Source of the DNA: Pelomyxa schiedti
Taxonomy: Eukaryota; Protista; Evosea
Length of the DNA: 64,000 bases
Assembly: GCA_020536535.1 (NCBI GenBank)
Contig: JAHLWZ010000310.1
Span: 5,805-69,804 of the forward strand
Reading direction: 5' to 3'
Shown: positions 43,568 to 55,598 of the stretch, piece by piece
Layout: each line of letters begins with the position of its first letter
How positions within the stretch are numbered: the first letter of the stretch is position 1
Translations under genes and position numbers: made by a program
The notes under the pieces: generated by a model
Database searches by the model: none
Told to the model about the DNA's origin: nothing
Seen by the model: only the letters and a program-made list of their open reading frames with translations

Positions 43568-46500
43568 ATGAGGGCACACGAGGTAACCTGCGTTGTGGTG
43601 GGGGAGAGCGACCACCTTGTGGAGCAGCTGCACGGAGCCATCTGCTGCGACCTCCGAGACCAATCAGCAGCGGCGCCGGGCTGCCACCACCACCCCGATC
43701 GCCGCCCCGCGACGATCACTGTGCCACCCCCCTTTCTCCCCACCACATGTGCTACATCAACCCCACACGTCATTGACATTTATCTGTGCCCTCCTCCTCC
43801 TCGTCGTGGTGCCACGCAAGCCCCCACAGAGGAGGAGGAGGATCCCACAGGGCCGCCGTCCCCCAACCACCACCCCCACCCCCACCACCACAACGTGCAG
43901 ACACCGAACTCCACAAGCACATCGTCGTGGCCGATACAGGGCCCGGCATCATCAGCAGCATCATCACCAGCACGTGCAGGGGATCGCAGGAGCGAGTGCC
44001 CCCAGGGGGCCAGCGTGGGTGCCGAGGAGGTGGTGGTGGTGTGGTGGAAGGGCGACACCGCACAGCCACCACCACCGCAACCACCAGGCAAACAAAGCAC
44101 TTGTGGGATGATGATGGGAATGGCTGCCACTGATGCCGAACCTGATGGTAACAGTAAGGGTGATGAGGATGATGGGACAGGGACTAGTAGTGGGTCTGCT
44201 GCTGCTACCACTATAAATACCGGGACTATTATGACCACCGGCGCAGTGGGAGTGGGTGGGGGAACGAGGAGGGAAGCGGTTGTGGTGTTGCTCCTGGTCA
44301 GGTGCCCCAAAGGAATTCCGGCCGAGAATGTCATTACTGACCTGAGGCGCGTGTACGGCAGCGACGCTGCTATGAAGGCCAACAGGAATTTGTTGATGGT
44401 GGACTGCGGGATTCCTTCTGCGGGCCACAGAAAGGGCGCCCCTCTGGAAATGGCCTTCAGAGTGCGTGTGCGAATCGTGTTTCTAGGTTTATATCTCTTA
44501 CTTTCTATTCACCAGCTCTGTGCATACAAGTTTGTGCAATGGAAGCCGGACTCGAAAACAGCCTTTGTGCAGCAGCTGGTTTCTTTAATTATTGAATCCG
44601 CGAAGGCACAATGCTGCGGTGAGTTGGGATTGTAACTCTTCAGTGTATTCATTCTTCATTCAGATCAAATGGAAATGGAATACATATCGCCTGGCAAAGT
44701 CGGAACAGCACTCGATATTACTGAGATGGCTCCTCCAGCAGTCGACTCCCTCCTGCAGTTTCTAAGTCTAACCCCAGATGAAATGGAAAAGAGTACTTCT
44801 GAGGGGAACGTTGCAGGTCTCACTGAAGCAGCTGCACTACGGAGATGGATTCAGGTGAAAAACTGGCCTGCAGTTAGGGAACTTGTCGGACTGGCACAAA
44901 CCTTGAGAGAACAGGATGTAAATCTTTCGGACTTGGAGTTGAATACTATTCCAGAACAGCTTGTGGGAATATCTTGCCGAATATTGGAACTTAGTGACAA
45001 CCCCATAAGGTACCTGCCGCCATGGTTCTTCCGTTGCAAGATACAGACTGTAGTATTGAGTGACAACTGTCCATTACTGGAATATGTTCCAGCACACCTG
45101 AAGAAGAGATGGCAGGCACTGAAGCATTACCTACTCTTTGGGGAAGAACCTGTACTTCCACGTGGTTCAAAACTCCACAAACTGGTTCTTATTGGTGAAC
45201 CTGGGGCTGAGAAGTCAGCCTTCTTGAAGTGCTTGATGGAAAAGAAGAAAGGAATAAAATCTATTAAACGAAAGAGCAGCCAACAATTCACACAGTCCAC
45301 TCCAGTCATATCAGTACATAAGCCCTTCAAGTTATCTAAAACATCAGTGACCACATGGACAGCATGGGAATTACGTGTGCTGTGCTCACTTCTGGTTTTT
45401 ATTTACTTATTTTTCCCAGGCACAGAGCATCCCTTGTATCCTTGCTTCTTCTGCAGTTACTCTATATTCCTTTTGTTCTTTGATTTCGACAAATTTTTTG
45501 GTCTTAAGGGAGAAGAAAGCAATGTCCACTTCTGGCTCAACGAACTATCTACCTGCCAAAGACTAACGAATCGATATGAGAATGCTGAAGTCATTCTAAT
45601 TGGGTTTTCTGTTCACAAAGGTCGTCATGACAGTAAAGCCATTTATGACAATCTTCTGCACCCTTGTGTGATTTCTCACCTTGGAGGCAACATTTCCTTC
45701 CGTGGCTGTATGATTCTCAATCTGAGGAAAGCAGAGGGACATTTTATTGAATACCCATATACTACATACACTGTGGGCCTTACATCTCTGGAACCAATCA
45801 AAGAAATAAGTCAATTACTGGATCGGTTAGTAGACGATCAGAATGCGCCAATCTCTTCCAGATGGGTCCACTTCTCTACAAGACTCTCACACGTGAAAGA
45901 ACCTGTAATCAGCTGGTCCAAGTTTGTTGCATTGGCCAGAGGCTCTGGTGTCGGGATACAGCAGACATTAAACTCAGATGTGGACATTCAAATGTGCTGT
46001 GATTACTTGTCAGACACAGGAGCAATCATACACTTCAAGCATGAGTACTGGTCATGTTCCAATGGGAACTTGTCACAGTTAGTAGTGTTGAAGCCGGAAT
46101 GGTTCAATGAAATCATGAACGTTGTGACTAATTCTGTTAAGAGACATGTGGATTTTTTGGAAAGATCCCAGCAGTATGGTGTGGATAGAACAGCAACTTT
46201 TTTACGTGAAGTTCCTGGCTACCCTATTCTTCTGTCATTACTCTCATATCTAGATATGGTGCTGCTACATGATCAGATACCGCAACTTTCCATTTCAATG
46301 TTCCGCTGTAACTACTCATTGGATGCCCTCTGGAGCAGCAGCGCAGTTTCCGACAACCAAGCAATTGCGAATTGTATCAGGACAATTGAATTTGGCTCTC
46401 TACACAATAAAATGCTCCCACAATTGATGAATATGCTGTGCCAAGTACCAGGTGTGGAACCAAAGTTGTCTGGAAAAACTGGAGTATGGTTTTCTAAGAG

Positions 46501-47961
46501 CTGCAAGGAAGGAATATCAGAGGACTTGTACCTCAGATCCACTTCTAACAAAGATACCTCGATTGATCTCTTCATGAAGCTAACGTGGGAAAATCATGAT
46601 ATTGATCCACTGCCTAGCTATAGCAGAAATTTGGGTGTGCTTTGCATAATGTGGTTGAATGACTTCTGCAGAGCAAACAATCTTCCAAATTTAGAGCAAA
46701 CATTTTCTTGTGCAACGTGTTTGAGGAAGCGGCTCGAGTCTAAAAATACAATTCTGCCATGCGAATTTCACTCTTTCAAGGAGAGTGAAGTACTCGAAGT
46801 TGTGCAGAATGGCAAGGAAGACCTCATTTGCTCTGTGGGTGGAAACGACCCACTGTACCTGGCAGATACTGCGCCAGAGTTTTCTCTCCTTGTATGCGAG
46901 GACAAGATAAAAACTTCTACCCACGAAACATGCCAGTTGATTGCAAAGGGAAGCGGTGTCTCCACGGCGTTACCAAAAGTTCTGCCAGTTCTATCTGTTT
47001 TAAGGGGTATTCCCCAACATCTCAACGTTGTCAAATACACTGGAGCCTGCATCGGAAAAGAAGGTCATCTCTTTTCGGTAACTGAATCCTTTCCTCTTAG
47101 AATTCCTCCGCAGTTGGAAGCCCTTGGCCTTAAAAATCATAACTCCTTGAACCTGCGGGATTTGATGGAACTGTGCATGCAAAGAGAGAATGAACCCAGA
47201 ACACCCAAAACAAGTTTGGACTGTTTATTTCCAATGTCTCTTAGGGAGAAATTACTCAAAGACGTGGCACGGGGTTTGCATCATCTCCATGCCGAACTTC
47301 CTTTTGTTGTTCACGGTGACCTTGTTGAAGATGGTTCATTATATCACACTAGCTTAACGCTTCTAACCCGCACACCAGGGAATGTGTTGATCTCATCCCT
47401 AGAAGAAACCGGAACTGGGCCATGGGCAAAGGTTTTATATTTGAACCTATATCTGAGCCTCACATAAAAATAGATTGCACATCTGGGTGTGTCACGGCCG
47501 GAAAAGCCGTACCAAAGTGGGCCGTGGTACCACAAGGGTCAAGGCTTGAGTTCGCAACATAACCTCAAGTCTGATCTCCGGAATTTCGGTATGTAGTTCG
47601 CTCTCATCACCCCATGATACCTTACCAAATTCCAAAAGGAATACTGGTTCACAAGGTTGTTTCTATGACCCAGCATCCAGTACACTTCCACCCAACTTGT
47701 AGTCCTCCCACAATCTCTCCTGCTGCAACGCCATTACAACCCGCTGCGCACCCGCCGGCACTGTCCTCAGTACCACCGATTCAACAACGAACAGACACCA
47801 GCAGTCATGAAACCACCATCACAACTACAAATCACACAGCAGCAGAAGTAGGGATACCAGTTTGGGCACAGCAAGTAATTGAGTGCTGCAGTCCCAGTCC
47901 CACATCACAGTCACCACCACCATCATTCCAACACCTCCTCCATATTTGGGGCCACTACTGA
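43568..47961 (+). CDS. Degenerate Roco protein (LRR - Roc - COR - kinase-like)
   Basis: LRRs (LSDLELNTIP, LSDNPIRYLP); KLVLIGEPGAEKS; COR-like YLSDTGAIIHF...VVLKPEWF; kinase-like HLNVVKYTGAC, DVARGLHHLH, VVHGDL, GNVLI. Confidence 0.75.
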
Positions 47962-50142: not shown

Positions 50143-53100
50143 TCAGTCAAGGAATGTATCCGGCTCAATAGCATCCACAGTAGCAATAGGATACTCCTCT
50201 GCCGGACCATCGGGAACTTGTGTGATGATAGTAGCTGTTGGTGTTGCTTCCACAGGCTTTATGATGGATGCACTGAGTTCTATGGGGTGTGTGTTGGGCC
50301 TGGCGCCGAGAGTTACAGTCACTGTGGATAGAAGCTGATATACTTTCTCAATGCTTGTTGTAGCTGTGGTGGCTGCGGCTGTGGATGTGGTTGTTGTTGA
50401 CTCGGATTCTGAAGAACCGGTTTGTTTTGGTGATGAACCATGGCCGAGTGTAAAGGGCTTCTTGCGCCGGATCGCTTGTTGGTCTTCAGTTACCTTAAAG
50501 AGGAATGAATTAAATGATGGTTATTTGGTAATTAATTAATGGGGCACCTCTACTGTTGATGACCCGGAGAGGGAGGAAATAAGTGTGGCTTCGTTCATGT
50601 CGGGTATAAGGAGCCGCATTCGTTTGAAAGATAGTATAAGTGGTATGGATACTCCAGAATCAGGACGGTGCCCCATGTGAGTCCTGCTTTGGGTGAGTAT
50701 TCTATGTGACGGTTCGGGACTAATACCTCATAAACATGTCGTGAGCTAGATTGGAATCACTGAAATAAAACTCAATCTGTTTCCGAATGTCATCCTGATC
50801 TTGGAATGAGAAAGAGTGGTAAAAAAATAAAACTGCAGACATTCTTAGAGCGATCTACAGTAGACCACTTTAATGTCAAAGTGTTGTTCTTTTCATCATA
50901 GTGACTTCCATCGAGGGGCATGTCCTCCATCCAAGTGTTTACTTCAAATCCTATTAAGAGTCAGAGTCGAACCTAAAAACAAAAAGAAACAACCATATTC
51001 CGGGAGGAAAAGCGTAATGTACTTCTCACCCAGTGAAATAATGATAGCGGGGGTGTTCGCTTTTAAAGTAAGGATGGGCATCAAATGTTGAAGAAAATAC
51101 CGGGGCGCTGTTTGAGCAACAATGCAAGAAATAGTTGTGAACTAGAATCACTGGCCTTACGTGCCGCTTGCTTCCGGTCATTACTGGTATTACACATCTT
51201 TGTAAGTTGGATTTCATCGGGAAGGCTGGAAAAGACTGACGCCTCGGCATTCAAGAGGTCCTCATAGAACTAAATACGAAAGATGATCAAGAGGCCATAC
51301 CGCTTTGGAGTTGTCCATTTCGATACTGGCAAGCAAGAAACGGTGTGCAAGGAGGTCGGGATACCTGAATTAATATGAGTCTATCATCGCGACCTTCTAA
51401 AATAATTTACCTCCTGATAGGGGATGTGAAGTGCGTGTAGATATCAACGCCAAGTGCATAATGGTGGGTGTCCACTTTGGTGCCACTGGCGTATTTAGCA
51501 AGCTGGAAAGATTGAGCAGCCAGATGGTCTACAACATCTGAAAGCTCAGGCGATAGTTGAGAAGCGCGTTCACGTGCTCTATCAAGGGATCTGGCATAAT
51601 GATAACTAGACGTGAAATCAATCTTCCCTAATCCCATGTTTTCTAGCATTTGGCTGAATCGAGAGCGCCTGTCAACTTTGGGAGGAGGGTGACTTGAAAA
51701 GTGATTTAGTTTGAAGGGTGAAATTATTTGTGTCATACTGGCGAATAATAGCCATAGGGAAGTGCTTTTGGTTGAACATGGCTACTCTAATGTTGGCTAA
51801 CAACATAAATTCCTCCACTAACTTATTGCTTTCTTTTATGAGATAATGATGAGCTGATACAGGCTGGCCTTTTTCGTCAAGTTTGAACCACAATTTCTTA
51901 TGACTTATTTCGATGCACCCATTCTGCCAAGGTAAGAAAAGTTAGGGTAGGAAAATTCTTACCTCTACTCGTTTTTTTCGAAGTACCATGGCTAAATTGT
52001 TAAGGTTGAGGATGTCACTCACGATATGCTCCACGCTCACTGCTCCAAATGGGCCCAGCATAGGGTTAACCAAATCAGGGTGGCAAGTACTCCAATCGTT
52101 CACAACTCTTCCCTCAATGCAATCCTGCGCCACATCATAGCTCAACTTCGCACAAGACCGAATCTGTTTAAGGTAAATCATGTGCATAGCCAAGCTATGA
52201 ATATACAATGGTTCTTCCAAACCACTCTTGAAGAATTTCTCCAGAGGGTGAAATGACCCATATAGCAGAAAAAGCTAATCTAAAAATTTTATTACCACTG
52301 GGTGTGGTTAAAAAGGTTGATTTAACCTATCTTCATCTGGGTTAAGACTGCAAAGATTGTTTGCCAATGTCTCTGGGAGCATAGGAATGACTCTTTGAAG
52401 TAGATACACACTTGTGCTTCGTTCTTGTGCAACTTTATCAAGAGGGGAACCTGGAGGCACGAAATAGCTTACATCAGCTATGTGCACTCCAACCTTGGGA
52501 GAGGAGTAAATCCGTGTAACTGGACGAGAGAACCGACCTCGAAGTTGCCATCGGGAAGGCTGGTACAAGATAAAGCATCATCCATATCACGACAAGTTAA
52601 GGGATCAATTGTAAAGATTCTGTTGCGCCTTTACTCTTTGAGGGGAAGAAGTGTGTCAATAACCTTTTATTGCGTAAATCTCTTCTTGATGCAATCTCTG
52701 ATGGTGGTATAACCCAAGGAAGTTTAGGAAGAACTTCCAAAGCCCGTGGGGGGAAGGGTGAATCTTCCACGTGGTTTGCCACGAGAATTGACTATCCCAA
52801 AAAAAAAAGGTTAGTACAACCCAAACGAACAGCATCATACTTTTGTTTCTGCTTCAATATCATCACATTGTCCTATAAGCGAAATAAAACTGTGATGGGT
52901 AAACATGATGTCCAGTCTTTATTAATAATACCGAACAGGTGGCCGGCGGTGTTGAGATAACCATGGGCAGTATTTGCCGTGACATAACTTATGTAGGACT
53001 CCTCTCTCAAGGTTCCTTAGATGATCTGGACCCTGTGGTATTCCTAGAGCAGTTTTAATTTCGAACATTCGAATGACTCCAATGGGCAAGTGCTTGTCAA

Positions 53101-55598
53101 TAGGACGGAAAAGTACATAGTTATCCCTCTCACTAAATAAAGTTAAGTGGAGAAGAACATATAAGCAATACACACAGGAATTGGCGGGAATCCATATCAA
53201 GGGGCTCAACGTAACCTACAGTATCCTCTGAATGATGCATCTCATATATCCCCACCACTTTTCCAAGGGGCTGCAAGGTAGTGGTTCGAGCAGCTGTTAT
53301 GAGTTCTTGCTGTTGTAACAGATGTTGCTCACTCGTCTTTTGAGGTGTGGGCTGAGAGACTTTTTCTTCTACTTGGTTTGTCTCTAGATTTGATTGTGCT
53401 TGCAAATCTGGGCATAGTGGTTTGGGGGACTCTGTTTGTTGCGGTTTCTCTGCATTTTCTGGTACTGTAAGGGAGTGAGGAGCCTGTGGCGGGTGAAGGG
53501 GTTCCTGTTCCGTCAGAGGAAGGGAGGGCTGTTTAGGTTCTGGTGCAGGAACTAATTTTTCTTCTGGAGTGAGTGAAAGTTGATTTGTAGGCGAGTCACG
53601 TTGCTCCTCTTCGATAACTTGTTGAGGTAGTTCATTTGTGGTAGACTCTGCAGGTTGAATAGAGCTCAGCATTTTTATCTCTCTTGCTAGCATTTCGTCA
53701 AGATCGCGGTCATTGTTCTCTGTGCAGGTTTCGATTTGACCCTCATCATCGCTTTCCTCCAGCTCCACAACTCCATCTTCCAACTGAGATGTTGAGAGAT
53801 CATTTAAGGAATCGTCTTCCACTTCAACTAAGTTTTCACTGGCATGCTTGAGAGGCTCTGTACGCTAGTAAGCACAAAGTAGAGATGTGACAAAGGGATG
53901 TGTGCCTTCTGGTTGTGCTTTTGATTTCCATGAAGACATGGGATCCAGCTCTAAGACTACTACATCACCATCAAATGCTCGATTGCGGTTCTACACAGCG
54001 GTGAGAAGGTTTTCTTTTTTTGATTTGCGTACTGCAATTGACTCTATGAAAACGTCTTGCGGAAAACCTTCTACTGTGGCATAGGCGTGCATGTAGTTTT
54101 TTGCATTAACACGAAGTGCTCCAAGGACAACGCTTCCCGCCTAGATGGGTGTGAGTTTCTTTAAATTGATTTAGGTCAAACCTTTAATCTTTGCTCAGCG
54201 GTAGCTGAATCAAGATGTTCAGGGAAGAACTTCCGCGCTATAGTTGTTGTTAGATCGCAATAACATAGACAACGCACCATGTTTATTGCGCTCACGATTG
54301 TCAAACGATGGGGAAAATTGATTGGAAGGCATCCTTCGACCACGTGGTCCCTGTTGTTGGAAATTACCATACGGTGCTCCTCTTTGGTTCCAGTATTGCC
54401 GGCCATTCTGATTGTTCTGCATGTAATACATAGGATTGCCTTGCTGAACTGCAGTATTATTTGCATATTGAGGTTGACTAGTCACCTGTTGTGGCTGTTG
54501 CATGATAGTGTAATGCTGTGGAGGGCTTGACAACGACTTTTGAATCAAAAACTGGTTTTGATGAGGAAGGTTGGACTCCTGTTGAGGCATAGGACTGAGT
54601 GTGTGCTGAGGCATTGCGGGCATGGTCTGTTGGGGAGCCATGGCAGTGAAGGTGGATTGGGGCACAGCATTGCATTGAGAAGGAAACACATTATATTGCT
54701 GTTGGGGATAGGCACCTAGCTGTTGCTGAGGAAACTGCTGCTGAGGAAACGAATTATATGCCTGCTGCTGGTTGATGAAAGGCTGCTGCTGTACCGGAAC
54801 TTGCTGCACCGCCGACCTGGAGTTCTGGAACTGACTTGGCATGCTCAGATTAGAATTTGGCTTATGCACAATGGAAATGCAGATGGACTTCTTGGTTTCG
54901 ACGCCCTGCGGCGTGGCCCGTTGCTGCTGCAGCTGGTTCACGAGCTGAGATTGCAACACCTGATTTGGATCCTGCTGGTGGCCCTGGGGTCTCGGCTGAG
55001 ATATAAGAAGGGAATTGGTCTGCTGCTGAAGCTGCTGAGTGTATCCCACAGTCCCCGGCTGCGCTTGCGGGTAGAACCTCTGCTGCGCCTGCCCATAATT
55101 GTAATTCGCGGGGGAAGGGGGAGCGTACTGGAAAGTAGACGGCTGCAACTGCGGCTGCTGGACTTGCATTTGTTGCTGCTGCTGTGGGACATATCCACAG
55201 TTACTAATATAGGAGCTAGTGGGGGCCTGGTAGTTGTAGTTTGAAGTACCACAATTACCCCCTGATGCCATTGGCATGTTTCCGGTTCTCCCATAAGTGT
55301 GGTTTTGTTGCTGCGGCGTGTAGCCGTAATTCGTTGAACAGGCTCCCTGTGGGACCCCCGTGGAATGCTGAGAAGCAGGAGGAAACGACGACGTTTGTGC
55401 GTTTGTGTAGTTGTTGGTGTAGTAACTGTTGGATTGCTGTGGTTGTTGTTGGTTCCACTGAGTGTTTGCGTTCGGGGCGCTGGGGGACATTATGGGAGGG
55501 GGCGAGGGCGAGTAGTAGTACCCCTGTTGTTGTTGGGGTTGTTGCTGGTTGTACGCGGCACCAGAGGTCGCCATCACGTGGCCCCCGCGGTACATCAT
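50143..55598 (-). CDS. DIS3L2: DIS3L2-like RNase II/RNB 3'-5' exoribonuclease with a Q-rich N-terminus and an inserted La motif (multi-exon)
   Basis: No PIN domain; [15 protein letters not shown]; [60 protein letters not shown]...[18 protein letters not shown]. Confidence 0.88.
50452..50794 (-). other. La motif (LaM) coding segment, 3 exons, within the DIS3L2 C-terminus
   Basis: Spliced: [82 protein letters not shown]. Confidence 0.82.

Follow-up and report, generated by a model that had tools for sequence, protein, structure and literature searches.

A predicted stand-alone La motif in an S1-domain loop of DIS3L2-like nuclease genes of Pelomyxa schiedti

The U-rich 3' end of RNA is a signal read by both La and DIS3L2, and the two proteins are commonly set against each other, as La shields such an end and DIS3L2 destroys it. 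A given 3' end is contested between La binding and attack by exonucleases, and tight UUU-3'OH binding by genuine La requires the La motif together with RRM1. In human, mouse and S. pombe, DIS3L2 is a U-tail-directed 3'-5' exoribonuclease with the domain order CSD1-CSD2-RNB-S1. It is an oligo(U)-binding exonuclease (PMC3884668), and its structures show a funnel, ringed by S1 and both cold-shock domains, that opens onto the RNB active site, S1 contacting both single-stranded and duplex RNA (PMC10023572). The DIS3L2 scaffold has also been remodelled in Ssd1, a non-catalytic fungal DIS3L2 relative in which lineage-specific remodelling changes RNA recognition (PMC8934651). A survey of 345 La and LARP proteins from 135 species lists no fusion of these proteins with a nuclease (PMC7928011), and our literature search returned no paper coupling DIS3L2 or RNB with a La motif, absence from the literature being a different matter from absence from the sequence databases. 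In the anaerobic amoeba Pelomyxa schiedti we find the two combined in a previously undescribed build of DIS3L2, which is real at the level of the DNA and occurs in two paralogous genes.

The first of these genes lies in a window of 64,000 nucleotides (contig JAHLWZ010000310.1, positions 5,805 to 69,804 of the forward strand), by which we mean the whole stretch of DNA that was analysed and to which all coordinates given without a further locus name refer. The P. schiedti assembly comprises 52.4 Mb in 5337 scaffolds, with about 7.4 introns per gene, nearly all of them GT-AG (PMC8887013); the genome scanned here amounted to 52,367,397 bases in 5337 contigs. All searches were run exon by exon, on exons read from the DNA and left unspliced. 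Frame maps, the start of the open reading frame and Pfam matches on exon pieces delimit a DIS3L2-like gene at 50143-55598 on the minus strand, opening with an ATG at 55598 and closing with the stop codon 50145-50143, with a Q-rich N-terminal exon followed by a CSD region, RNB, and an S1 domain carrying a La insertion. The first exon (54219-55598) is a low-complexity stretch of 459 codons rich in Gln, Pro and Tyr, for which Pfam gave no family; such a segment could localise the nuclease to granules. Just upstream, on the opposite strand, positions 44669-47467 (+) form an uninterrupted open frame of 932 codons, which is unusual for an intron-rich genome.

Judged by its domains, the gene is a DIS3L2-type nuclease. 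The RNB catalytic domain (51410-52630, minus strand) is spread over at least five exons, and the RNB profile search suggested in the initial annotation produced Pfam matches on five exon pieces, which cover profile positions 7-310 in order and score up to 95 bits. The catalytic motif DPxxxxDxDD, which had been reported as intact, is present as such near 52600-52570, within the piece 52630-52481. When a late RNB exon was searched against the PDB, the S. pombe, human and mouse DIS3L2 chains came first (E 1e-9 to 8e-7, for this one exon only), with DIS3L1 and RRP44 ranking behind them. Upstream of RNB, exon-wise Pfam scanning, an insensitive procedure, gave a partial match to Rrp44_CSD1 (E 7e-4, below the cut-off), no match to CSD2, and no PIN domain on any upstream piece. 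A DIS3L2-type C-terminal S1 is also present and is split by the insertion, with a Pfam match below the cut-off and two abutting matches to a profile of our own, described below.

The first S1 exon (50994-51059, minus strand, as are all exons that follow) was delimited from its splice sites; it presumably carries the early OB-fold strands, an assignment made by position only, and neither Pfam nor our own DIS3L2 C-terminal profile matches it significantly. Exon A (50841-50950), recognised by Pfam Dis3l2_C_term and by our profile, continues S1 up to the strand preceding the insertion point. Exon B (50727-50794) then encodes the first third of a La motif, including most of the residues of its 3'-end pocket, and exon C (50548-50683) its middle. 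Exon D (50146-50493) is a single open frame, at the start of which the La motif ends: its first part (50455-50493) reads in frame as the last strand and basic end of the motif and resembles the genuine La gene of this genome (C711), and it is followed by a Ser/Thr-rich linker seen in the translation (50353-50454, no Pfam family found) and by the strand or strands that complete S1 after the insertion (50248-50352, recognised by our profile).

The La signature proposed from the initial reading of this DNA is borne out by Pfam for exons B and C and by PDB matches for exon B. Exon B matches positions 1-20 of the La family (PF05383) with 38.0 bits (E 1.5e-9), exceeding on its own the family cut-off of 37.1 bits, and exon C matches positions 23-51, collinear with the match of exon B, with 20.5 bits (E 4.5e-4); the objection that no La HMM hit would be found falls with this result. 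In the PDB exon B aligns most closely with La of Dictyostelium and of Trypanosoma, in the La motif of each, and LARP6 and LARP1 come close behind genuine La. A PDB search with exon C alone gave no match; in the protein atlas its nearest clusters are La. With human La residue numbers (Q20, Y23, Y24, D33, F35) set on exon B in what we take to be their proper places, the register against the La chains in the PDB points to a pocket in which Q20, Y24, D33 and F35 are kept and Y23 is replaced by F. To this extent the pocket residues claimed earlier stand; the equivalent of F55, claimed along with them, would lie in exon C, where it is placed by the Pfam register only. No RRM follows the La motif in exon D or downstream, and no other Pfam family was found there. 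There is thus no La module, and the gene is not filed as a member of the La/LARP family.

The introns between exons A and B, B and C, and C and D measure 46, 43 and 54 nt and, read directly on the minus strand, are all GT-AG; they lie in phase 0 after exon A, phase 2 after exon B and phase 0 after exon C, with the frame kept throughout. They are typical of this DIS3L2-like gene, as its nine upstream introns (44, 47, 43, 39, 46, 46, 31, 41 and 43 nt) are likewise GT-AG and span 31-47 nt. The shortest of the gene, at 51270-51300, is a predicted GT-AG intron of 31 nt between two exons supported by homology. Retention of any one of the La introns leads to a frameshift or a stop, and the only alternative that stays in frame is the skipping of exons B and C together, so that an isoform without La is possible. 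The La exons would presumably be included constitutively in the mRNA.

The position of the insertion within S1 was established by profile matches on either side of it. Exon A matches positions 30-56 of the 87 of Pfam Dis3l2_C_term (E 0.0035, below the cut-off). The S1 tail was recognised neither by Pfam nor by the PDB nor by a two-sequence tail profile, and a larger DIS3L2 C-terminal profile was therefore built from the last 230 residues of 105 DIS3L2 proteins, gathered in a search whose query was an open DIS3L2 frame, free of introns, on a metagenome contig. Applied to the three minus-strand frames of the region wherever they are open, this profile assigns exon A to positions 312-342 and the tail (50352-50248) to positions 343-381, so that the two matches abut at 342/343. 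Both score individually low in bits. The score of exon A was equalled by none of 2000 shuffles, as was that of the 72-residue tail piece (50361-50146; 0/2000), and the 35-residue core of this piece was equalled by one of 2000. Aligned with a mouse-genus DIS3L2, exon A and the tail match on either side of a loop of six residues that links the two final strands of S1. Because they both abut and flank that loop, we place the insertion, consisting of the La motif and the Ser/Thr-rich linker (about 125 residues), within it. The resumption of S1-like sequence after La, asserted in the initial annotation, is upheld by the continuation of the profile match and by the shuffles, and so, with the exon structure and the Pfam La matches, is its broader proposal of an in-frame La motif within the S1 region of DIS3L2. 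We regard the resulting architecture, a stand-alone La motif predicted in a loop of the DIS3L2 S1 domain, as very likely.

The genome holds five RNB loci. The one closest to the window gene, with 62, 68, 41, 33 and 37 % identity over the RNB exons, is located on C1074 (L015 3346-5203, minus strand); its catalytic motif is intact, and direct reading and Pfam indicate a second DIS3L2-like gene whose S1 loop holds, at the corresponding site, a degenerate La motif. In this paralogue the S1 part is followed, within a single open exon of 210 codons, by a Pro/Thr-rich linker and then by most of a La-like motif, a segment that is collinear with exons B and C of the window gene and matches Pfam La below the cut-off (E 0.002). 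The exon ends at the codon boundary where the window gene has its third La intron; here the intron is 44 nt long and GT-AG, and the next exon encodes the end of La, a linker of about 300 residues, an S1-like tail and the stop, the La motif being flanked by very long Pro/Ser/Thr-rich linkers. Our DIS3L2 profile finds the tail in the right place, weakly (82 of 2000 shuffles were as good), and has no match to the S1 part. According to our reading of the alignment the pocket has drifted, with Q20 replaced and D33 changed to E. An AlphaFold model of the La segment, computed from a four-row alignment, was all-helix with a pLDDT of 68 and was judged unreliable. As a second gene in the same genome is built alike, the La-DIS3L2 build is real and kept; the insertion is also old, since it predates the duplication that gave rise to the strongly diverged C1074 copy.

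Besides the window gene, the Pfam scan of the genome found La only on C711 (L001 1440-1800), in a genuine La gene with a La motif and RRMs, and no LARP was seen, the exon-wise scan giving a lower bound in both cases. The C711 gene has a 48-nt phase-0 intron at the codon boundary homologous to the third La intron of the window gene, so that this phase-0 position is common to genuine La and to both nuclease-borne La motifs, and the exon downstream of it begins with sequence very like that at the start of exon D. This one intron position in common suggests that the insertion probably arose as a DNA-level copy of a La gene with its intron carried along, an origin that we infer, the remaining La introns not being common to the C711 gene and the window gene.

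Compared with the DIS3L2 of human, mouse and S. pombe, the Pelomyxa gene has an RNB domain with an intact motif, a partial CSD1 match below the cut-off, a DIS3L2-type S1 and no detected PIN; it differs from them by its S1 loop, which is about six residues long in the mouse genus and about 125 here (La plus linker), and by the long Q-rich exon added at its N-terminus. Animal DIS3L2 proteins resemble the Pelomyxa gene in having a long insert within CSD1. With genuine La and with LARP1, 4, 6 and 7 the gene has in common a La motif with conserved pocket residues, whereas the Pelomyxa motif has no RRM, and hence no La module, and is embedded in another domain of an enzyme. A different gain of an RNA-binding domain is seen in metagenomic DIS3L2-like proteins (P0023, P0026, P0029, P0030, P0032 and P0058), which have an N-terminal RRM in place of CSD1, confirmed in P0026 at residues 9-77. 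They resemble the Pelomyxa gene in adding an RNA-binding domain to the DIS3L2 scaffold; theirs is an N-terminal RRM that replaces CSD1, in contrast to a La motif inside S1. Ssd1 has lost catalysis and uses an alternative surface, whereas the Pelomyxa gene keeps its catalytic motif intact and has gained a foreign domain.

Pfam La was absent from all of the 120 DIS3L2 relatives listed, a mostly animal set that does not reach the Amoebozoa. A phmmer search with exon D against a large protein library that excluded P. schiedti proteins gave no match, a result that has no bearing on rarity, as this exon is poorly conserved. When metagenomes were scanned with an RNB exon, the 80 loci obtained were nearly all intronless bacterial RNase R with no La nearby (tblastn), which is uninformative for amoebae; two of the 80, bacterial in type, came from human-gut metagenomes.

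In DIS3L2 the funnel for RNA is rimmed by S1 and the two cold-shock domains, so that the inserted La motif would be expected at its mouth, tied tightly through its N-terminal side and loosely, through a flexible linker, at its other end. There it could serve as a further reader of 3' ends on RNA, U-rich ends being the likeliest, raising substrate uptake by capturing the 3' end before it passes into the funnel and then handing it on. The hand-off step must be assumed, because the La motif and the RNB active site cannot occupy one 3' end simultaneously; we infer this step, as we do the specificity of binding and the location of the motif at the mouth of the funnel. Capture of the 3' end is favoured by the terminal-nucleotide pocket kept in the window copy, and is opposed by the lack of an RRM, by the drifted pocket of the paralogue and by the competition of two sites for one 3' end. 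As the pocket positions of the C1074 copy are degenerate, reading of 3' ends may also not be the conserved function. We hold a capture role to be possible, at somewhat short of even odds. The genome contains at least five loci for tailing enzymes of the Cid1/TUTase type. In a more specific and rather unlikely version of the proposal, the La motif, tethered to the nuclease, would compete with free La for U-ended transcripts that are nascent or misprocessed (U-tailed RNAs, products of Pol III) and pass those it catches directly to the funnel of DIS3L2, the choice between protection and degradation becoming an intramolecular hand-off. For the reading as a whole, that of a functional P. schiedti gene for a DIS3L2-family 3'-5' exoribonuclease in which a La motif and linker in the S1 loop would serve as a 3'-end reader, we estimate a probability of roughly 0.6.

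The same La motif could instead be a general anchor for RNA or protein, holding a structured RNA body or a partner without U specificity and aiding recruitment or processivity, as La motifs do in some LARPs, with the 3' end meanwhile threading into the funnel. This is consistent with a La motif that stands alone without an RRM, with the close match of exon B to LARP6 and LARP1, and with a paralogue in which several pocket positions have changed and the motif and its place have been kept; however, the window copy keeps the contacts to the terminal nucleotide, which would be unexpected for a purely structural or protein-binding role, and we consider an anchor somewhat unlikely. It is also conceivable, if improbable, that the motif is a gate or auto-inhibitor that sequesters U-ended RNAs or occupies the funnel mouth, so that decay would be confined to some substrates or to a regulated state. 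Competition between La binding and exonucleases for the same 3' end is established knowledge, and a La motif tethered directly to S1 on its N-terminal side, with a flexible linker on the other, would be well placed for such a function. Nothing in the sequence indicates a regulatory switch, however, and the retention of La by two old paralogues fits a gain of function equally well.

The remaining explanations concern the gene itself rather than the role of its La motif. A cassette of La exons that is mostly skipped, or a decaying remnant translated without function, is suggested by the possibility of omitting exons B and C in frame and by the degenerate motif of the paralogue, yet in that paralogue a single exon encodes both La and the S1 part, the frames of both copies have stayed open despite roughly 35-65 % divergence in the RNB exons, and the window copy passes the Pfam cut-off on 20 positions alone; a cassette or remnant therefore has, in our view, a small chance of being correct. 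It had also been foreseen that the La exons might belong to a separate transcript. An ATG overlapping the donor site of exon A could indeed open a short frame into exon B, as would suit a separate small gene for La lying within the 3' end of the nuclease gene, and an assembly chimera would create a similar appearance. Against such artefacts, the same arrangement occurs on two different contigs, exon D joins the end of La to the S1 tail without an intron, and S1 is incomplete without this tail; above all, S1 and La share one exon in the C1074 copy, which for the architecture rules out a chimera, a nested gene or a mis-joined model. An artefact is accordingly very improbable indeed. Returning to the La motif as a 3'-end reader on a DIS3L2-family exoribonuclease, this remains the reading that we prefer.

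A La motif that two old paralogues have retained, and that is predicted to lie at the rim of the funnel of DIS3L2, provides a ready-made experiment, which could show how 3'-end recognition modules cooperate or compete and whether a La motif works without its RRM. It also offers a clean example of a domain inserted into a loop of an OB-fold, with an intron carried along. If the proposed surveillance role, which we regard as rather unlikely, were true, the Archamoebae would have fused a classic protector and a classic destroyer of U-ended RNAs into a surveillance device made of a single protein.
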